DNA from: Hyphochytrium catenoides
Taxonomy: Eukaryota > Protista > Hyphochytriomycota
Assembly (NCBI GenBank): GCA_900088475.1
Contig: FLMG01000516.1
Coordinates: 1 to 64,000, forward strand
DNA length: 64,000 nt
Direction of reading: 5' to 3'
Numbering within the stretch: position 1 is the first letter of the stretch; each line of letters begins with the position of its first letter. The notes below the pieces were generated by a model. It saw only the letters and a list, made by a program, of their open reading frames with translations, was not told the DNA's origin and searched no databases. Position numbers and translations under genes: made by a program. Shown one piece after another: positions 15,438 through 57,256 of the stretch.

Positions 15438-18400
15438 CTACAAAGCCCATTCGTCGGCTTCTTGCCTCTCCCTATCAGAGATGAACGGCTGAAAGACGGA
15501 GCGAATCATCATCTCTCCGCAGAAGAGGCACTCAGATGCAATGGTACTATCCAGTCGGGCTTGCAACGTCTGCTTGTCAACCTTCTCACCCTTATTTCCT
15601 CCTGAACGCCCCGGGACACTGCTATCTCTACCGGTGTACGCCAGCTTGTTCAGGATCTCCTTCGCAGCCTTCCGCTGGGTCGTGCTTAGGTTTGGAATCA
15701 CCTCGTCCATAAGACAGTTGGCATGGAATGTGTGGCCACAAGGAAAGCAATAGAAGGACCGCGCTAGAATGGGCTTTTCGCAAATGCCACAACGCCGGTT
15801 GCCNNNNNNNNNNNNNNNNGGCTCACCTTGAGATGCTCAATTTTGTCGTTGTATTCCTCTAATGACTGGCAGATCTCATTCTTAAAGTCGTCAATGATAA
15901 CAAAGTCGGGGAAGAATGACAGCAGGTCCTCAATCTTGACAAGCCCCGGAGGATTCACTTCATTGAGGATTTTGGTCGCCTCTCTTACGTTTCCGTCATT
16001 GTCAATCACCTGCTTGGCAATCAGAAGCCATAACTTTTTACGCAGTTGCTCATCTTCAGGTTGCGCTGCGACTTCTTTGGCCATTGCAATGTCACACTGC
16101 AAAGCTAGATCAACGGCCTCACCGTAAAGACCCATCGCAGCATAGATGTATATCATGGCCTTCTTCCTCTGAATCCTCATACAAATTCTCAGCGCGTACT
16201 TCAGATCAAAGAAGGCTTGGTTGGTCGACTTCTTGCGAATGAACCTAATTAACCGCCTCTCATCAGGGTACCGCGCAAGTATGGAGAGCAATAGATTGTG
16301 AACAGCAGGGTCCTTGTTACCCTTCTGGACCACCTGCTCCAGGTATTCGAGGGCCAGATCAGTCTCAGCCGTGCCTTTCCTGGCAACATGCTGATTCTGA
16401 TAGCGGACAATAGCTGGGATGAGCTTTGATGGTTGCAACCCACTAGCTGCATCCTCCCAAGCCTTAAACGTGTCCTTGGGTCTGAACTCTACAAGCGTAG
16501 GCGAGTACTTATAATAGAGCTGCTCTACCTGAGAAAGAGAGGGCACCGTTAAGTCTTTGCAGGTTGCCGTCTTGCTATGAACAGCATGCGATAGGCCCAT
16601 ACCTTTGAGATAGGAGCCTTAGAGAGGACTTCTAGAGCAAGCTTATAGTCTCTGCGCTGAATGTGGTAGGTGATGACCCGATCATAGTCCTCTATAAGCT
16701 GGGCGTAGAAGAGCATTTCATCCGTTCTTCCATGGCTAGACATCAAGTTGAAGGTGATAGCTGGGTCCAGCTTGTCCTTATTGTCGTGAATGAACTGTTT
16801 GAAGTCATACAACCATTGTGCCTGAAGCTCAATATCCTCACGCCGATCATGACCCTAGATAAGAGGAAGACACAGAACCGTTAACACTCTTGCGGCGCTC
16901 AGTAAAAAGGGGTAGCAACTTGCCTGCAAAGAGCTAAATCTTTCTAGGTAAATCTCCGCGAGCCAAGTACAAATCATTGTCTGCTGCGTCTTCGTGCTAG
17001 GAGGTAGCGATTTCAGCTTTTCCAGTAGGTAGGTCTTCAGAGCACCCCTCTCTTCAATGCCAACGAAGCGAAGAGCGACCTCTTCAAATGCCTGATTGGT
17101 CTTGGCATAAATAACAGCCGCTTCTTCATACTGCCCACGCTTTACGAAAAAGTCTGCTTGAGCATTGAGCACCGCCTGGCGCTGCGTCGAGTGTCGGCAG
17201 AAGGAAAGAGCTTTTTCGAAGAGCCTGTTATCGGAGTCCGCCTTGGCTTTTCTAAGGTAGAGCTGCCAGATATCCCTAAGCATGAATGCAGGATAGGAAG
17301 AGTGAGGGACAAGGAGATCTGTCTTCTACAGAGGCTTTGCTAGTCAAACGTTTACCTGTCTTCTTTGCTGATGACCAGCTGGAACACCTTGAATGATCCC
17401 TGCATCCAAAAGGTGTTCTTGGCCGTGTCTTTGGTAATGCTTCTCATGGCGTCATACTTCTGAAGAGGTATATCCATCAGAGCGCTCTGTGTGATCTTAC
17501 TGATGACCTTAACATAGAATCAGACGCAGTCAGTCTTAGCTGAGCGCAAGGAACAAGAGCTTGAGTCTGACCTCCAATCGCGATGGGTATAATACAAGAA
17601 AGTGAAATTCTGATAACAGAAGACCGATCGGGACTTCGCCCGAGCCACTTCCCCGCCGATTTGACGCGCCTAACCCAAGCTTGACGTTACGTTCGTTCAA
17701 AAGGAAAGTACCATCCCTACATAGCAGAAAAATCCAATCGTGAGCATCTCTTTCGGGTTAGCCTCTTGATTGCCGTACAGGATGGTACAACTCACCGCTT
17801 TGGATCACTATAAGTCATATCCAGTTGTAGCACAGAATCCGTAGTGAGGACGGCAAAGGTTTTGCCTTTCTCATGGCGATGGCGTGACCAAACTTGGAGG
17901 TAATTCTTGCCAAAAGGCAGCGAGTACTCGATAAAGCGGAGCTTTTCTGATGCTCCCACACTGAGAAAGAGTGCTTCAAAGGATGGACCTCCAGAGACTT
18001 GAAATAGACGTGCAGACTTCTTGCTGCAAACGTGGAGTTCATAGTGCAATGGCTTAGAATCATAGCGATCAGAACTACATAAAAACATTCCAAGCTACCT
18101 TGAAGTTCTGGCGCAGATTGCCACGAAGTGTCTGACATCACCGTTGGTACCAACGACGCTTTCAAAATGAACTCCGACGATTGCATGGCCGGAAACGTAA
18201 TATACTCGCTTGAAGAGCTTTTCCCTTCCATCAAGAATGACTTCGTATATGTCCCCTCTATCTGAGCCTACCAAGAAGGACTTTGTAGATACATCTGTTC
18301 CTTCTTCCCTATTCCATGCCACTGAGAGAATTCGGAACTGGGATCCTTGCTTAAGCCGCCGCGGCTTGTCTGAGTTCATGTAAAGATAATAGTTGCTGCC

Positions 18401-20104: not shown

Positions 20105-21442
20105 ATGCCTCGTCGGCCTCCGAGAAAGAAGACCAATTCAGAGCGATTAACTTCAGAAAGGAAGAATTGCCGCATCGATGGCTGCGAAGGAGAAGTCTTC
20201 AAGAACAATCTATGCGAGACACATGACGACGGCGTGCAACGCTGCACTGTAAGTGGTTGCCTGAACTATAGTCGGCGCAAGGGTTTGTGCATTGCCCATG
20301 GTGCGGTCGTAAAGCGGAAGATTTGCTCGCATGAGGGCTGCAGTAAGTTTGTCCAGAAAGAAGGAAAATGCAATGCTCATGGACAGCTCAAGAAACGCTG
20401 CTTGGAAACAGACTGCAAGAACCAGGCAGTCAAGCATGGAGTTTGCATTAAACACGGAGCCTTGAAAAAGCGGTGCAGCATGCCAGAATGTGACAATCAG
20501 GTTGTCAAGCAAGGACTTTGCTGCAGGCATTTAACAACCGCCGGAAGTTGCAGCGTGTCAGACTGTACGTTTCCGTCGGTAACCGATGGTCTCTGTGTCA
20601 AGCACGGAGCTAAATGTTCTGCGGAAGGATGCGCTGAAAACGTCTTTCGAGAAGGTCACTGCTTCCGCCACTGTCCCGTTATCAAGAAGTGCAAGGTTGG
20701 GGACTGTCAAAATCGTGCCAGTAAGAACGGGGTCTGTATCGAGCACGGAGCGCAGGTTTACAAATGCGTATGGCCTTCATGCTCTAAAAGGGTGAAGAGT
20801 CCGGGCCTCTGTCCTATCCACACGCCAGTCAGTCTGCCAGCGATGTCTAGAATGCAGCAAGAAGGCTATCCAAATGAACAATTTTCTAAAGAAGGTGACC
20901 AGCCGCCAGTAGTCACTAGTTCAAGTGCCAGTCGATCAGAGAAAGAGTCAGCGTCCGAGAGTGCTGATAGATGTAGCATCGTGAGCTGTGAACGCTTGGT
21001 TGTCTCGAGAGGGATGTGCGCCCTTCATCGGAAGAGACCGCGACAGGCGGCTCTGGCTCGTGGCGAGGAGGGCAAGCTAGACGCCTCTAAAGAGCGAAAT
21101 TCTTCCTCTGTCGGGTTGCGAGGTCAACAGAGTGCCCCTGCAGGCAAGCATTCTTCCGAGGAAGTCAACGAGAACGAGAACTTAACAATTGTCGAGTCCG
21201 GCACGCCGCCCCTGCTACGACGTCAGTCCGGTTCAGATAAGAGGACGGGGGGCAAGAAGCATCAGACGACCAAGAAGGCTACAGACCTATCTCAAATTAC
21301 TGAGTCTGCTGACGATCCTCAGCATGGCCCACTTCCGTTGAATCCATTCTTGCCCGGCACAAAAACATCCGAGGCATCCACTGCACACGAGAGAGACCAA
21401 GGGATTTCCGAAGAGCCACCTCAAAAGCCAAAATCGCACTAA
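20105..21442 (+). CDS. WRKY19-like C-x4-C-x9-C-x2-H zinc-finger repeat protein (445 aa, single exon)
   Basis: Ten repeats, e.g. CTVSGCLNYSRRKGLCIAHG and CKVGDCQNRASKNGVCIEHG. Basic N-terminal NLS-like stretch and disordered C-terminus. Confidence 0.88.
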   Translation: MPRRPPRKKTNSERLTSERKNCRIDGCEGEVFKNNLCETHDDGVQRCTVSGCLNYSRRKGLCIAHGAVVKRKICSHEGCSKFVQKEGKCNAHGQLKKRCLETDCKNQAVKHGVCIKHGALKKRCSMPECDNQVVKQGLCCRHLTTAGSCSVSDCTFPSVTDGLCVKHGAKCSAEGCAENVFREGHCFRHCPVIKKCKVGDCQNRASKNGVCIEHGAQVYKCVWPSCSKRVKSPGLCPIHTPVSLPAMSRMQQEGYPNEQFSKEGDQPPVVTSSSASRSEKESASESADRCSIVSCERLVVSRGMCALHRKRPRQAALARGEEGKLDASKERNSSSVGLRGQQSAPAGKHSSEEVNENENLTIVESGTPPLLRRQSGSDKRTGGKKHQTTKKATDLSQITESADDPQHGPLPLNPFLPGTKTSEASTAHERDQGISEEPPQKPKSH

Positions 21443-25399: not shown

Positions 25400-26475
25400 A
25401 TGGAGAAAAGAAAGAAAAGTGGCGTGAACGGCCGAGAAACCGCCTACCTCAAAGTCTCTGTGGCTGGCAGCAGAGGAGGCTGGCATGGACGATATAGAGG
25501 TGACGGTCTGGAGGATGCTGACGATGATGATTCCTCTGTCACTAGCGAGACTACACCGATGTCAACCTGGTCATCGTCACAGTCTTCCTCTGGAGTGGCA
25601 CCTCATGAGCTGACGGATGGCGAAATGGAGATGAAGAAGAGCGCCGACGCACAACAAACCGACCTGTCCCAAGTTATGGCCGCTGCCTCCATCACGCCCT
25701 GGAGACAGACTTCTACCTCTCTTTCGCTCCACCGTCAGCCCTCCTACTACCCTGACTCTGAGGACACACCGCCAAATACCAGTACCAGGTCTCAAACCTC
25801 TGATCAAGCCACCAGTGTGACGCACTCCAGCGGACATCGGACAGCAAAGAAGAAGACCCTGAGGTACGTTGTTTTTGTACCTCAACTTCTACTCTTAAAA
25901 AAATGTCGCCAATCTGACGTCAAGCGCCCATTTGCAGCCTTCATCGCAAGGAAGTCAATCGGAGAAGCGCCAGAGCCTCACGGCTGAGGAAGAAGGACTA
26001 CCTTGACAAGCTAGAAGAAGCTGCACGTCAGAGCGCCATATATCGCCATATCGCGGAGAATGCCAGCGACATGCTTACCCTTCACAACCTCGATGCGGGG
26101 GCATCCTACGCCTATGTCTCGCCCAGCGTCACCAAGATGCTGGGCTTTGAAGCGCAAGAGATGATTGGAAAGCCTTGCTATGAATTCATCCATCCTGTAA
26201 GGCTTCTTTCTTTCCCCGACAATTGCTAATTATATATATATACTAGGCAAGTTAGAAGATGGACTCTCACTCGATCTTCTCTGCAGGATGACATTGGGCC
26301 TATAATTAGCGCTCATGAGAGCTGCATTGCGAAAGGAGAGATTCTCGTGGCGAAGTATAGACTTAGAAGGAAGGATGGCTCATACCTATGGGTGGAGACG
26401 TCGTCACGGACTACCTCAGGGGGTATCGTCTGTGTAACGCGGGATGTGTCACACATGCCAGTGCCAGACTTCTAG
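25400..26475 (+). CDS. bZIP-PAS transcription factor (3 coding exons: ~25400-25863, 25938-26196, 26287-26475)
   Basis: Basic region RKEVNRRSARASRLRKKDYLDKLEE (N-x7-R-x9-L), followed by a PAS_3-type domain YRHIAENASDMLTLH...YVSPSVTKMLGFEAQEMIGKPCYEFIHP|DD...YRLRRKDGSYLWVETSS...IVCVTRDVS. The start codon is uncertain. Confidence 0.88.
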
Positions 26476-26752: not shown

Positions 26753-27736
26753 CTAAAGGGAGGACTGCTGGATAGATGTGCCAGCTGTCGTTGGCACGCC
26801 GGCGATGCTGCTGTGCTGGTGCACCCAAGCTAGAAGGTCGTCAAAGGCGGTCTGTTGTCCCACTTCATTGAAACACTCATGAAAGAAGTCTGGATACGTC
26901 TTTAGAGACAAACTCTTAGCCTCAACATTCTTGCACCACTCCACCGTGTGCTTGGGATCGATGATCCCGTCTTGCATGGGCACCAGCACCTGCAGGTTGT
27001 AAGCTATTCTTGATTGAGCACTAGTTCCCGCCATTGCGTCCTCAAAGCCGAGAAAGAACTTCGCTGAGATGTTATTATGATTTAGAGGGTCCTTCATGTA
27101 GGTCTCCACTTCATCCTTGTCGTGAGTCATCAACTCAGGAGTAAGCTCCGACTTAAACTTTAAGGTAGGGGCCACGCGCACCAACAAGCGAACGACGCTC
27201 TTCAGCGTCTGGCTGACGGGCTTGAAAAGCTTCAGAGCGGGAGCTGCCACCGTGACAGACCGGATTGGGAGGTCAGGATATCGCATTAAAGTTCGGATAC
27301 ATAGAAGTCCACCCATGCTGTGTCCCACCATGTGGAGGTCAGAGACTCCTACAGCTGATAACATCAGGCTGTCCAATCTTTTGATGCAAAGCGCTAGATC
27401 CTCAACAAGAAGTTCAAAGTCCGGACTGTGGCCCCGCTGTCCTTTCCGCCTTCCATGCCCTCTCTGGTCCACGATGAAGACTCCGCCAATACTGCCCTGG
27501 ACATAATGTGGGAACTTATAGTACCGACCACCGTGCTCTCCAAAGCCATGGACGCAGAAGAGGACCGACTTATGCTTCCACTCCTTCTCACGATGGAAGA
27601 CAGCATATATCTCGTCGCCGTCGCTTGCGGGGATCGTCAGTACCTCGGACACCCAATGCGAAGGGAAAGGAGGTATGGTTTTGGGCTGGATGGGAACCTC
27701 ATAGGCATTGGAAGATTGACCCTCTGGAGCGATCAT
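26753..27736 (-). CDS. Monoglyceride lipase / lysophospholipase (alpha/beta hydrolase, Hydrolase_4), intronless
   Basis: HGFGEHGGRY, DQRGHG, nucleophile GHSMGG, catalytic Asp (QDGIID) and His (FFHECFNE). Confidence 0.92.
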   Translation of the reverse strand: MIAPEGQSSNAYEVPIQPKTIPPFPSHWVSEVLTIPASDGDEIYAVFHREKEWKHKSVLFCVHGFGEHGGRYYKFPHYVQGSIGGVFIVDQRGHGRRKGQRGHSPDFELLVEDLALCIKRLDSLMLSAVGVSDLHMVGHSMGGLLCIRTLMRYPDLPIRSVTVAAPALKLFKPVSQTLKSVVRLLVRVAPTLKFKSELTPELMTHDKDEVETYMKDPLNHNNISAKFFLGFEDAMAGTSAQSRIAYNLQVLVPMQDGIIDPKHTVEWCKNVEAKSLSLKTYPDFFHECFNEVGQQTAFDDLLAWVHQHSSIAGVPTTAGTSIQQSSL

Positions 27737-28334
27737 GGTTGCACCGCGCGCTGTCAGTCGGAGTGAAAGCACCGGAACTCGGAAAAGACTTATAAAGCTG
27801 CTTGCTCTTTATGAAGTTATAGAGCGACTCATGCGATGCTGAGGCTACCTATCTTCACGTCGGTCTAGAGGTCTGAGGAGATCTGTATAGTGAAGTCTTC
27901 TCTGTACAGGTACACATAGCAGCCACGCTTGTCTCCTCTCCGCCTCCTCTTCGTCCCTATGCGTTCTACTCTTTTTTATCTTCATCAATTCCTTCCATAA
28001 ACTAGGAAAAGCTCTCCTCAAGAACTACCAGGAGGGAGGAGGAGGCCCACGTCAAACGCAGCTGCTGAGTCAGATGAGAGCTTCGTTGTCCTTCCTTTTT
28101 CCTGAGAAGTAGAGGAGAGAGAGCAGCTCCTCCTCTCTCTCACAATGCAGTGAGAGGACCCATAGCCGCCATCGTAGAACAGTCCAGTGTTGAGGTAAAA
28201 GTGTGACAGTGTGCTCCACCCAGAGATTGAAGGACAAAGGAAGGGGAGGAGAGGAGGATGTACGTTCTGTATATTTCATTCAAGGGGAAAGAGCCAGATT
28301 GAGAGGTAGGACGGGGAGGATAATGCAGCCACAA

Positions 28335-28389: not shown

Positions 28390-28440
28390 AGAGANNNNNN
28401 NNNNNNNNNNNNNNNGAGAGAATGTATGAGAGAGAGAGAG
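28335..28440. repeat. (GA)n microsatellite with assembly gap, between divergent lipase and LMW-PTP genes
   Basis: GA runs flanking Ns. Confidence 0.9.
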
Positions 28441-51675: not shown

Positions 51676-54600
51676 NNNNNNNNNNNNNNNNNNNNNNNNN
51701 NNNNNNNNNNNNNNNNNNNNNNNNNNNNNNNNNNNNNNNNNNNNAGACAGAGACAGAGAGAGAGAGAGAGAGAGTGAGAGAGAGAGAAGCACCGGAAAGA
51801 CAGACAGAAGGAGAAAGCTAGTGCAGCAACTGACCTGAAACTTGCTGGTCTCGCTAAAGCCTTCCTCTACCTGCTCCTGAACTTGGTCTAACTTCTGAGC
51901 AGTCAACTCTTGCTCGCTCTGTACAGTGCCCAGAGTTCCATTCATGGCTCGCAGCTCCTGCCAGATCTTCACCAGATCAATCTGAAGAGCTCCATCCGGT
52001 GCTCTCTCTCCTTGGTTTCTCTCCCTGCTCTCAGCAACGAAAGACTGCGATGGCACCTCGCCTAAGTTCTCCGCTGTTTTCTTAGTGGCCGCACTGATTT
52101 CTAAAAGCTGCTTCTGTGCAGCAGCGAGCTTGCTGCGGAGAGCTTCAAGCTCAGACAAAGCAGCCCTGCACCAGGGTGACCACAGGAACGAGGAGACAAG
52201 GTTAGAGGAGTGATGAAGAGCGCGAGAGTGAAATAAGGATCAAAAAGAAGACAGAAGTAATAGACCAAGATCACAGAGTGGGAGATAAATGAAGGGGAAA
52301 GACCTTCTCCTTTGACGAATTGCTGACCTTTCTCTCTCCCTGAAAGCTTCCAGTTCTTGAGGCGCAACGAGCGCCTTGCCTTCTCTCTCCTTCAGCTCTT
52401 TCTTTGCTTCAGATAGCTCTCCTCCAGTCCTCTTCAGCTGCTCTAAGGTCCTGCCCAGATGACCGCGTAAGTCTTCCAACTCGTCATTCGCCATTCTCAA
52501 GCTTATCTCGGTGTGGCCCAGGGCGCTTGACACAGAACCCTGAACAATGTGTGAGAGAGAGAGGTGGAGAAAGATACAGAGGCAAACATGAGCAAGCCAA
52601 CAGGTGAAAGGAGGGATGCAAAAGGAAGCGAGAAAGAAAGGAAGAGAGAGAGAGAGTGACAGAAAGAGCGTAAAAGAGAAAGAGAGTGACGACAGCGGCA
52701 TAGTGGCGTCATCGCGGGGCGGGGAGGGGGGAATGTTGGGGAAGGCGGGACAGTAGCACCTACCTTCTCTTGGTGAAGCTGCTGCACTAGTCCTTTAAGC
52801 TCGTCTCTCTCTTCTGTCAGAATGCGGATCTGCTCCTCAAGTGATAGTTGAAGCTCCTTCAGCTGGTCCGCAGCCCTAGCCTTTGCCGCTATCTCAGCTT
52901 CTCGCTCCCTCCTCTCCATCTCCTCTTGAATTTGGCGCTGCTTCTCTTCTTCTATCCTCCGGAGCTGCGCCTGTCGTTCCTCTTCTTGTCTTTGAAGCTC
53001 CCTCTGTCTTTCCTCTTCTAGTCTCTGCCTCTCCTTTCTATCTTCCTCTCTTGCTTTGAGCTCAGTCAGCTGAGCCCCGGCTCTAAACCTCCTCCAAGCA
53101 CACTGGACGACTATAGAAGCTGCTCGCATCAACTGGAACTGTCTGTAGATCAGCGGATGAGAGAGAGATGGAGAGCGAGAGATGAGGGTCAAGGGTAGAA
53201 GACGAAAAAGAAAGATGACATAATACTTTCTATGCCTTCTCTGGATTCTCTATCTCTTTCGTTGGGTTTTTGCTAAACGTGGCTATCTCTCTTTTCGTCT
53301 ATCCACACTCCCCACTTTGCAGAAAACTCTCATCCTATCCTTCGCCGCTCGCCTGGTACCTGGAGGCAGCCTGGGCCCGGTACCAGCTCTGCACAGAGCG
53401 CGCGGCCCTACTCTGCGCCTGGAACTTCTGAGCCCCTACCGAACGTCGGTAGGCGCGTTGGATCGTTCCCGCAGCCCAGCGGATGAGCATAAAGCGGCGA
53501 CGAAGGTAGAACCCCCGATAGTGCTTCTGAAGCCTCACAGCTGCACGATTGCGTCTGTATGCCTTGCTGTGATAAGAAGAGCAAAACGAGCAACAGCATA
53601 CTGAAGTCAGTAGAGAGTCTAGGCCAAGGGAGTTCCAAGGTGGGGGTCTGGAACACTTCGATTATCTGGGAACAAAGAGCGCTGCGCGACACTACCAATA
53701 TGGGAGAGGTTTCCACAAAGGAGAGAGTGATTGGCAGTTCGCAAGAGAGAAAGAAAAAATAGTAGGAGGAAGAGTCACCTTCTGCCTCTTCCAATAAATC
53801 CTCTGAGAACTCTTTGTATTTGTCTCGCAGAAGGGTCCAACTTCTTCATCCACTCTCGAATTTTCCATCCCTTATAAGCTTTCTGGATTATGATAGCTGC
53901 ATAGTTGACGTATCTAGATAACAACAGAGTGAGAACGCGAGATAAAGAAGAGGACGAGGGCGCAGTAGAGACGAATGGCGCCAGCTGCAAGGGAAAAGCT
54001 AATCAAGCAAGGCTTGGAGACGTACTGTGCCCGTCTCTGCTCTAGAAGAGCAAAGGATCTCTTCCTCAGAAAAATCTTTGTCTTCCCAAGCTGGAAGCCA
54101 TAGAACTCCATTATAACGTCAAATGAAGCATCTTCTCGTTTCTTGAGACCCAAGTTCATCGAGCAGAGGCACAAAAGGCATTAGATCAGATAGTTGAGCA
54201 CACCTAGAAGTGTCATAATTAATTGGAGACTCGGCTTACATCGTGGCTGTGCGCCTCTGTTCGAATGGCTCTGCTCCACTCTCTTCTAAGAATGATCTCC
54301 AAGAGCTCCTTTGCCACCTTCTCCATATCCCGTCCCCGTGTTGGCACCTTGATTGCTTTCCCGTTGATTATCTACGAGCGTTCCGTGATACAGAGGAGCA
54401 AAATTAGTCAACGAAGGACCAGCCGTTAAGCATCAAGAGATTTGGAGTCTGTCAGCGAAAGAGACTCAATAAAAAGAGGACAGGAGAGACCCTGGAAGGG
54501 CGGATAGGAGAGCAAGAAGACGAAGCGGTACTACTGACCCTAACGCCCAGCATATAGTACTGGTCCACAAACTCTTCGTGAGCGTATCTCACAGGGTAAC

Positions 54601-57256
54601 CCGCCCGCGCCACTCTCACTGCCTCTAGCACTCCGCTGTACCGGAGTTGGCTTACGATGCGAGGGGCGTTGAACGTGTCTGGCAGAAGCGGTAGAGGAGG
54701 AAAGATCAAAAAATGAGTTCAAGAGGCCTGCCGAGGGGTAAAAAGCACAATCCCGATAGGATTTGCTCTAACCTGGTGCATTGAGGTCATTAGGCTTGAT
54801 ACACCGAACATAATGTGGTGCTGTAGACCTGAAGTAGTCCAGAGAATAGGGACGGCGAATGGTAAGTGGCAATGCCCACCGGAATGGCTAGAGAGGCCAA
54901 GGGTTACTGCCCAGAACAGCTCTCAGGAGAGCTCAGCCGTGAGAGTGCGAGATATCGGGCGACAAGAGCGGTGAAGTTTGGCGCTGACAAGCTTACCGGA
55001 TAGTCTTCACAAGTGCAGTTAGCTGGGTCTTGAACTGTGAGCCCAGGCTCATTGCATTAATGGAGCTGGACCGTCTCATCATCGTCATCGAACCAGGGGC
55101 AGCTGCTAGTGCTTCCTCTCCTCCAATAACAGAGGAGGAAGACGCCAGGGGACCAAAGAGATGTTGGAGAAGGATGTGCGTGGTCCTTGCCAGCACGGCC
55201 CTGCTATCTGAGTGGAGTAGGTCCTTGTTTTTATCTATGAAGCCTTGGGTGCTGTATAGCACAGAGCCAGCATAGTGCTTCACTACGAACATCTCCTTCA
55301 CTTTCTGGAAGTTGCTCACTTCAAACTTGGGATGCTTGCCAAGTCGACTAAAGAGAGAGAATGGTGAGAACTACTACGAAGGGAGTGAAAGCAGAATAAT
55401 GTACAGGCCAAAGCGCTTGTCTACCTATAAAGCTTCTGTGCAAAGGTAGAGTCTGATCCTTTCGGGAACAAGCACTCCTCGTCCAGCAACCGCAAGATGC
55501 CAGTACATCCCTGAATAAGCTCGACGCTTTGCTCATTATTTGGAAAATCTATGTAGGACCTATCGGAGGTTGATGACGGAACGAGAGGTGAGTGGCGCTG
55601 TAGCTCAGAGACCAGAAGTCACTGGGGAAGGTGGAATCTAGGGCTTGAGGCCCCATAGCTGAGGATAGATATATGCTTGATATCACAGAGCTCTTGTGCA
55701 GGTAAGATATTGTAGAAAAGGACGCCTGTAGAATGCCATGAAAGAGAAAAGACGACCCTTTCCTCTCCACTTCTTACCATCTTATACCCTCTGTTTCGTA
55801 CTCGCTCTGCTCAAGCTTGAAGATGTGCTCATTGAACTGATTTTGTAGGCACTCGTTCGCATAGTTGATGCAGAGTTGCTCGAAAGAGTTCACTTCAAAG
55901 ACTTCAAAGCCGAAGATATCCAAAAGCCCAACGAAAGCGAAGGTGTCTCCCTCGTGACTGATCCGTTGGTTGATGCGGCTGACAATGTAGGTAAAGAGAG
56001 TGCCATAGATTGCCTTCGCTAGCCCATCACGTGCTTCTGCTGCCTTTGATGGAGAAAGCTGTACAGTGAACTTTTCTCCTCGAGCAGCCACCGTCCTAGT
56101 AACCAGCACCTGCCGAGAGCAACAGAGAGAATAAGTGCAAGGGCTGTGACGGATGCTGCCTCGTCCTCCACCTCGGTCCACATAGATTTCCCCGCTATGT
56201 CTCCCTCCTTTTCCATACCTTCCCAACGGAGTCTGGATCTAAGCCGCACAGCGTGGCCATTTCCTGCAATGCTTCCAGAGCTGCTGGGTCAGAGATCTCG
56301 GAACTTTCATCATCGCCTGAGACGGTAGCTTGTTAGTGTAACAGCTTTAAGAGCAATATGGGTCAATGGAAGTGATGTAGGAGAACGGAAGTCTAGCTTG
56401 AAAGGACAGAGGCATACAGAAGAAAAGAAGGACAGATAGCATTGTAGCTTGAGAGGTTAGCGCAGTCTAGGAGAGTTTAGCTTGTTAGGAAGTCGAAAGA
56501 TGCCTTTACCTGCTTTGGCCTCCCGCGGTGTGAATGTGACATTGCCTAGGTATAGAAGGCCCACTAGCAGCGTGAAGATCTCCTCTTGCTCCTCTAGAGA
56601 GAAGTTCATAATCGCCATAGAGTTTCGCGTGATCTCAAACTGACGCGTGTCATCCACTCCATCCTGCCGCTTGTAGCAGCCGCTCTGAGAAAGATATCGG
56701 AAGTGCTCCATGGGGTGCGTCAGATGCCACCTTGCTTTCTCGCTCTGGTTTACAAATAGAAAGAAAAGTGTAGTGTAAGCCCAGATACTGGACGCAGCAA
56801 TAGAGGTCCAGTGGACGATCCCTCGCGCTTCCCTCATGTTAATATGAACCTTGCTGTCTGGGGTTCTTCTCGTCTCACCTGTGTCGCCCCACACATCAGC
56901 TCGTAGAAGATGTGGTAGTTCCTCTCGTTGAGCCCGGGGCTGACGACCCGAACCTTCTCCAATAAATATGTTTGAATCACTCCGCCAACTAACTTTCCCT
57001 GGAATGCAAGGAGTAGACGATTGTATATGAGGGCCCTCGACGGACAAAAAGAGAGGAAATAACTAAGAGGCACCCTATTTTATGGTGGGAAGGGGCGCGC
57101 CTAGCCACAGGAGCTGAGAGGGAGAGAGAGAGAGAGAAGAAGGAGAGAGAGAGGAGAGAGAGAGAGAGAGAGAGAAAGAAAGAGAGAGAGNNNNNNNNNN
57201 NNNNNNNNNNNNNNNNNNNNNNNNNNNNNNNNNNNNNNNNNNNNNNNNNNNNNNNN

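Follow-up and report, generated by a model that had tools for sequence, protein, structure and literature searches.

A predicted bZIP–PAS factor of Hyphochytrium catenoides whose vestigial zipper coincides with the PAS N-terminal linker helix

bZIP–PAS factors have been described in oomycetes (PMC7273347, PMC4046829) and in diatoms, where bZIP5/6/7-PAS of P. tricornutum and their homologues are diel/circadian regulated candidates. PsBZPc32 is the sole bZIP with an extra domain among 71 in P. sojae (PMC4046829). Its counterpart in Peronophythora litchii, PlBZP32, is a 392-aa protein in which the PAS "immediately follows" the bZIP, and its silencing alters oxidative-stress tolerance, sporangia, cyst germination and virulence (PMC7273347). 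Aureochromes also place a bZIP first and a PAS-superfamily sensor second, the former with a complete zipper of several heptads and the latter a LOV domain that binds flavin and has the motif GxNCRFLQ. A linker lies between their zipper and LOV. For aureochrome 1a, LOV dimerisation is reported to raise DNA affinity (PMC4721966). In the metazoan bHLH-PAS factors (HIF-alpha, ARNT, BMAL1, CLOCK and AHR), a PAS directly downstream of the basic DNA-binding helix contributes to dimerisation and partner choice. Here we describe a bZIP–PAS locus in positions 1–64,000 of contig FLMG01000516.1 of Hyphochytrium catenoides, a 64,000-nucleotide stretch referred to as the window.

The gene lies on the plus strand and comprises three exons, whose translation gives a predicted product of 303 aa (Table 1). 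The span singled out earlier, 25938–26475, corresponds to exons 2 and 3. Exon 2 reads ...HRKEVNRRSARASRLRKKDYLDKLEEAARQSAIYRHIAENASDMLTLHN... in translation, and exon 3 closes with a PAC-type end, ...YRLRRKDGSYLWVE...VTRDVS. Both introns have GT..AG borders and all three exons are open. The Pfam PAS_3 profile matches exon 2 at positions 2–32 (22.4 bits), up to the last exon-2 residue, and exon 3 at positions 33–84 (E = 1.1e-8; 35.7 bits against a cut-off of 25.6), from the first exon-3 residue, such that the PAS family match extends over both exons. Because the profile is contiguous (32|33) across intron 2, the exon 2|3 splice junction and the PAS domain are real, which at the level of sequence establishes the predicted model of exons 2–3. 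An in-frame TGA at 25915–25917 lies upstream of exon 2 and the first in-frame ATG of exon 2 is M200, so the basic region needs an upstream exon. Only the acceptor 25937|25938 keeps the frame, since the frame opened by the nearby AG at 25923–25924 ends in a stop. We infer exon 1 and its start codon from frame logic alone; the ATG at 25400 is in good context, and the final residues of the exon, RTAKKKTL, form the beginning of the basic region. Exon 1 matched no Pfam family, and a word-indexed protein search with the exon-1 ORF returned no relatives.

Table 1 Features of the bZIP–PAS gene in the window
Feature	Position	Strand	Details
Exon 1	25400–25863	+	ATG at 25400; 154 codons + 2 nt by translation
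Exon 1 content			Ser/Thr/Asp-rich N-terminal region; S 18%, T 12%, D 8%
Intron 1	25864–25937	+	74 nt; GTACGT...TTGCAG
Exon 2	25938–26196	+	bZIP basic region, vestigial zipper, PAS N-terminal half
bZIP basic region, S155–K174	25938–25995	+	N162 (25957–25959), R170; signature NRRSARASR
Vestigial zipper = PAS N-terminal linker/N-cap helix, D175–D199	25996–26070	+	First Leu L180 (26011–26013)
PAS core N-terminal half, M200–P241	26071–26196	+	PAS, PAS_3 and PAS_9 matches; Cys235 at 26176–26178
Intron 2	26197–26286	+	90 nt; GTAAGG...CTGCAG; in-frame TAA inside
Exon 3	26287–26475	+	PAS C-terminal half D242–S296; 7-residue tail; TAG 26473–26475

The surrounding sequence holds several other open reading frames. 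A single-exon 339-aa ORF on the minus strand (26753–27772), Hydrolase_4 or monoacylglycerol-lipase-like, is convergent with the bZIP–PAS gene and ends about 280 bp from its stop. Its nearest Atlas clusters are all bacterial (Bdellovibrionota, Melainabacteria and others), which raises the possibility of a bacterial-type gene within a eukaryotic genome. On the plus strand, a 445-aa ORF (20105–21442) has two Zf_WRKY19 zinc-finger matches (E = 4e-25) and a weak match to CxC6, a KDZ-transposase-associated domain, and may be related to a mobile element. A 278-aa ORF on the minus strand (15764–16600), with Clathrin/VPS and Vps41 TPR-like matches and a 16-base N run at 15804–15819, is probably one exon of a Vps41/Vps39-type gene. 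The further N runs (assembly gaps) are at 28395–28415, 51676–51744 and 57191–57256; the one near 28.4 kb lies in a purine-rich simple repeat with the translation ERERER.

The translated exon 2 has the canonical spacing of a bZIP basic region, N162-x7-R170-x9-L180, with the first Leu nine residues beyond. Pfam bZIP_1 (PF00170; E = 4.1e-5) covers only positions 9–34 of its 64, at exon-2 residues 3–28, which correspond to the basic region and the first Leu, and its score for exon 2 alone is 24.0 bits, below the cut-off of 27.6. In the bZIP register, the d positions of the heptad table are L180, S187, A194 and L201, and the a positions are L177, A184, R191 and S198. Neither this table nor the bZIP_1 match, which ends at profile position 34, reveals the multi-heptad leucine zipper of the bZIP family. 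The zipper is vestigial, cut down to about one hydrophobic heptad (L177/L180). Without any spacer, the chain then passes into the PAS N-cap, YRHIAENASD; the Pfam PAS models begin at exon-2 residue 34/35 (Y190). These results agree with the earlier note on the canonical basic region, on Ser and Ala as the next d residues and on a direct run into the PAS N-terminal helix; the zipper it described as missing persists as a vestige of about one heptad. The note had held that an extra exon with a full zipper would overturn its reading, and this is excluded because the basic region and the PAS N-cap share one exon.

What stands in place of the zipper is recognizable from bacterial proteins. An exhaustive representative search with exon 2 gave 17,656 matches, and the best 150 were taken for PAS column statistics; all of these 150 were bacterial multi-PAS kinases, and no bZIP–PAS relative was among them. 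Local alignment of the spliced PAS against the 150 proteins yielded 941 related PAS units, which align end to end with the PAS of the window. A metagenome scan found one locus, a bacterial PAS kinase, and Atlas feature searches returned mostly bacterial PAS fragments together with one diatom PAS cluster. The word-indexed protein search with exon 2 gave no match, full-length relatives falling outside the length window of the 86-aa query.

Just before the core, the consensus of the 941 units reads KAEEALRESE(E)RYRLLAENASD, the inter-PAS linker of bacterial S-box proteins. The zipper segment of the window protein, K179-L-E-E-A-A-R-Q-S-A-I-Y-R-H-I-A-E-N-A-S-D199, matches it residue by residue, and the linker KLEEAARQSAIYRHIAENASD mirrors KAEEALRESEERYRLLAENASD of the bacterial tandem S-box PAS kinases. 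From this match it follows that the "first zipper heptads" double as the S-box linker/N-cap helix. Together with this linker, the PAS of the window protein is 38–45% identical to the bacterial units. The bacterial kinases are prokaryotic, multi-PAS and devoid of a DNA-binding domain, whereas the window gene has spliceosomal introns. A further difference from the bacterial arrays lies upstream, where the bZIP basic region takes the position of their preceding PAS: R172 of RLRKK is paired with the Arg of bacterial RDIT, and the basic region finishes at the point at which that PAS would finish. In the same alignment, which covers 25939–26196, bacterial RDITERKxAEEALRESEERYRLLAENASD lines up with SRLRKKDYLDKLEEAARQS-AIYRHIAENASD, a correspondence that hints at how the bZIP–PAS fusion arose. 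For exon 2 alone as a single sequence, AF2 predicted one helix over residues 2–45, with pLDDT of ~90 over the first 30; given the bacterial alignment, it predicted a helix at 19–41 and then confident PAS strands and helices. The alignment-based model also places beta strands at residues 2–13, which were rejected as an artefact of the preceding PAS in the bacterial rows. In the modelled structure, a continuous helix joins the basic region to the PAS N-cap.

The closest described proteins are the oomycete BZP32 factors, which we aligned by hand, with no E-value attached, using the P. sojae, P. litchii and Saprolegnia sequences of Tables S1 and S2 of PMC7273347. Read from the invariant Asn, Phytophthora BZP32 (NRDHSRKSRLRKKEFVESLKHEVGQLQVYQQICEQCMDCIALV...YTRVLGY) and the window protein (NRRSARASRLRKKDYLDKLEEAARQSAIYRHIAENASDMLTL...VTKMLGF) align without a gap as far as LG(Y/F), and are identical at 22 of 64 positions by our own count. 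Counted from this Asn, the first Leu is residue 19, the N-cap Tyr residue 29 and the Gly of LG(Y/F) residue 63 in both proteins; first Leu and N-cap Tyr are 10 residues apart and Asn and Gly 62, in the window and BZP32 alike. Saprolegnia BZP32 has identical junction spacing, and that of Pythium is two residues shorter, within the PAS hairpin. The ungapped, equally spaced junction indicates that the direct bZIP–PAS fusion is common to the window protein and the oomycete BZP32 family. The two also have the same layout: a long low-complexity N terminus leads into a bZIP basic region, and a lone PAS closes the protein. The basic region matches NRDHSRKSRLRKK of oomycete BZP32, and the motifs SRLRKK, N-cap Tyr, LG(Y/F), HPD and G(I/V)VC(V/S)TR are common to both, C290 of IVCVTR corresponding to the Cys of oomycete VVCSTR.

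Several differences set the window protein apart. Its d positions are L, S, A and L, whereas those of BZP32 are L, L, C (V in Saprolegnia) and I. The oomycete N-cap is Cys-rich (CEQCMDC), with a CxxCxxC cluster at whose positions the window protein has A194, A197 and M200. The basic region (NRDHSRKSR) and PAS of BZP32 are divergent, whereas the window basic region is a canonical NxxSAxxSR and both window domains are nearer the general consensus than the oomycete ones. The window protein is also shorter (303 versus ~390 aa). The P. litchii model of Table S2 ends in ...DMVHPVR, and read-through of window intron 2 (IHP|VR...) gives the same ending, which hints that P. litchii BZP32 has an intron at the same position. 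Diatom bZIP–PAS proteins have the same domain pair and belong to the same lineage group, the junction likeness itself being drawn from oomycetes only; an Atlas cluster of ~238-aa diatom PAS proteins is the nearest eukaryotic look-alike and serves only as a lead. On these grounds, the gene very probably belongs to the stramenopile bZIP–PAS family of the BZP32 kind. An independent fusion is possible, because the PAS is closer to bacterial S-box units (38–45% identity) than to oomycete BZP32 (~31%). As a separate observation on the same tables, many P. litchii bZIPs in Table S1 of PMC7273347 carry a conserved C-terminal ...EYFRxF... domain. These look like a bZIP + NTF2/SnoaL-like family, which may already be listed, under no name of its own, in catalogues of oomycete bZIPs.

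Among solved structures, both PAS halves match metazoan bHLH-PAS chains first. The PDB sequence search returned HIF-1alpha, HIF-3alpha, EPAS1, ARNT, ARNT2, BMAL1, Spineless/AHR and PER, with best E-values of 1.5e-6 and 1.4e-5 for the half-domains. The exon-2 half matches PAS-B of HIF, ARNT and BMAL1, and the exon-3 half matches Spineless/AHR and PAS-B of HIF. In a profile search of the PDB, the bHLH-PAS matches are accompanied by FixL and further PAS chains from bacteria. The metazoan factors carry a bHLH in place of the bZIP basic region and a pair of PAS domains; Pfam found no HLH domain and only one PAS here. The likeness is confined to the PAS, at the level of the PAS_3 family, and does not amount to orthology.

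How such a protein might bind DNA can be proposed from these features. DNA binding by a bZIP basic region requires a dimer, whose halves are joined immediately C-terminal to that region. In bacterial sensors and bHLH-PAS factors, PAS domains of this sort associate in parallel, with the N-cap and beta-sheet as dimer contacts, and the nearest solved structures, from HIF, ARNT, BMAL1 and PER, are dimerising PAS domains. A single hydrophobic heptad, with S187, R191 and A194 after it, would be too weak a zipper, so a PAS dimer probably holds the basic regions. The predicted factor would consist of a S/T-rich N terminus, a canonical basic region, a former zipper of about three helical turns, which would serve at the same time as the A'alpha/N-cap linker helix, and the C-terminal PAS. 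A PAS dimer in parallel arrangement, with its paired N-cap helices, would probably keep the two basic regions at the DNA fork, and changes in PAS–PAS association (partner choice, ligand, possibly redox) would then set binding to ACGT-core sites. Taken as a whole, this account of a BZP32-kind factor, with a combined zipper and N-cap linker helix and basic regions held by a PAS dimer, is the one we favour and consider rather probable. PAS-assisted dimerisation is plausible, and through it the choice of PAS partner or a bound signal could control DNA binding. Dimerisation that depends on the PAS, as the earlier note had proposed, is reasonable in view of the unbroken AF2 helix from the basic region into the N-cap, and we regard it as an evenly balanced proposition. 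The BZP32 relatives keep two Leu (d1 and d2), with Cys/Val at d3 and Ile at d4, and may therefore still use a short zipper; S187 and A194 may simply weaken the zipper here. It is a more speculative step, which we hold to be possible yet doubtful, that the bZIP of this lineage no longer has any autonomous zipper and binds DNA only in dependence on PAS–PAS association through the N-cap helix. If true, the protein would be a minimal eukaryotic one-component factor with a dimer switched by the ligand, redox or partner state of its PAS, and would stand as a naturally occurring, light-independent equivalent of the aureochromes.

The resemblance to aureochromes has a limit in the sensor domain. In both, the bZIP precedes a PAS-superfamily sensor, and the dimerisation of the aureochrome sensor, which raises DNA affinity, follows the same logic as proposed here. 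This order, together with the G-x-x-C spacing in MIGKPCYEFIHP, which includes Cys235 in exon 2, is all that would speak for a LOV-type blue-light receptor related to aureochromes. Aligned with GxNCRFLQ, the window sequence GKPCYEFIH retains the Cys, and N, R and Q are replaced by P, Y and I. No LOV chains are present among the 56 and 42 PDB matches of the two PAS halves at E <= 10. A few "sensory box" chains in the profile search, which we take to be bacterial short-LOV proteins, rank below bHLH-PAS, FixL and other PAS (E of 1e-5 to 1e-4) and are aligned only as far as profile position 77, short of the Cys motif. The Cys235 column is variable in related PAS units, where F, A, L, P, I, V and S occur, and it holds Cys in 11 of 925 related non-LOV bacterial units; the motif NCRFL is absent from all 150 closest proteins. 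In the PDB match to BMAL1 PAS-B, GTSCYEYFH aligns to GKPCYEFIH with Cys on Cys, and BMAL1 PAS-B is not known to bind flavin. At the counterpart of Cys235, oomycete BZP32 has Ser or Phe, according to where a one-residue indel is placed. We judge Cys235 to be a coincidence at a variable position with no special role; the LOV reading is rejected on this ground, and we consider it improbable in the extreme. The predicted domain proves to be a generic single C-terminal S-box/PAS_3 domain of non-LOV type, and with the vestigial zipper and missing linker the protein departs from aureochromes at each of these points. The earlier note had already recognized G-x-x-C in company with missing flavin-binding N/R/Q residues and had kept the protein apart from aureochromes, as found here. 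The signal it saw in a Cys at the LOV photoadduct position falls away, given a residue that is not conserved in BZP32, is found in few bacterial units and recurs in BMAL1. Nor is this the distinct new type of factor that the note proposed, the published oomycete BZP32 bZIP–PAS proteins having the same ungapped junction; it appears to be a zipper-reduced member of a known bZIP–PAS family and not a new class.

Other explanations concern the partner, the signal and the gene itself. The protein could be the subunit of an obligate heterodimer, partner-selecting or inhibitory, that pairs with a stramenopile bHLH-PAS, another bZIP–PAS or a bZIP. Its best solved matches are the heterodimerising PAS-B domains of HIF-alpha, ARNT and BMAL1, and the bZIP–PAS and bHLH-PAS genes of diatoms are co-regulated in diel/circadian networks. 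However, tblastn found no second PAS or bZIP gene within the 64-kb window, and no geometry of DNA binding is known for a bZIP half-site protein joined to a bHLH partner, which leaves such a subunit rather unlikely. A one-component factor gated by redox or a small ligand, the reading of the earlier note with light sensing set aside, in which C235, C254, C290 or a cofactor in the PAS pocket switches dimerisation, would accord with the altered oxidative-stress tolerance after PlBZP32 silencing (PMC7273347) and with the Cys of IVCVTR (C290) that is common to oomycete VVCSTR. The sequence argues against such gating at three places: the oomycete relatives have Ser or Phe in place of C235, the CxxCxxC cluster of their N-cap is missing here, and no cofactor-binding signature (FMN, haem His or FAD) was recognised. 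PAS domains often bind ligands, yet the PAS-B domains nearest to this one among solved structures serve mainly in protein interaction, and we think this gating unlikely. The placing of exon 1 and its start codon, the empty word-indexed search and a genome that is apparently unannotated leave room for a mis-modelled or non-functional gene, with another true transcript or as a decaying copy. Against this stand the three open exons, the consensus GT..AG at both introns, the Pfam profile continuing over intron 2 and the intact conserved PAS and bZIP positions, which make it very unlikely.

The locus by itself is an ordinary member of its family, and the bZIP–PAS proteins are candidate clock/stress regulators in diatoms and oomycetes. 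The bZIP–PAS literature that we found remarks neither on the overlap of the zipper segment with the PAS N-terminal linker helix nor on a copy that keeps only one zipper heptad, as that of the window does; the overlap and the one-heptad zipper are modestly new. The window copy combines the most canonical basic region and PAS with the least zipper-like connector, and together with the BZP32 junction it raises the question of whether the PAS N-cap helix acts instead of the zipper as the dimerisation element. If the N-cap helix does replace the zipper, the regulation of the family would be accounted for, and protein engineers would gain a compact scaffold from nature on which to build DNA binders under sensor control.
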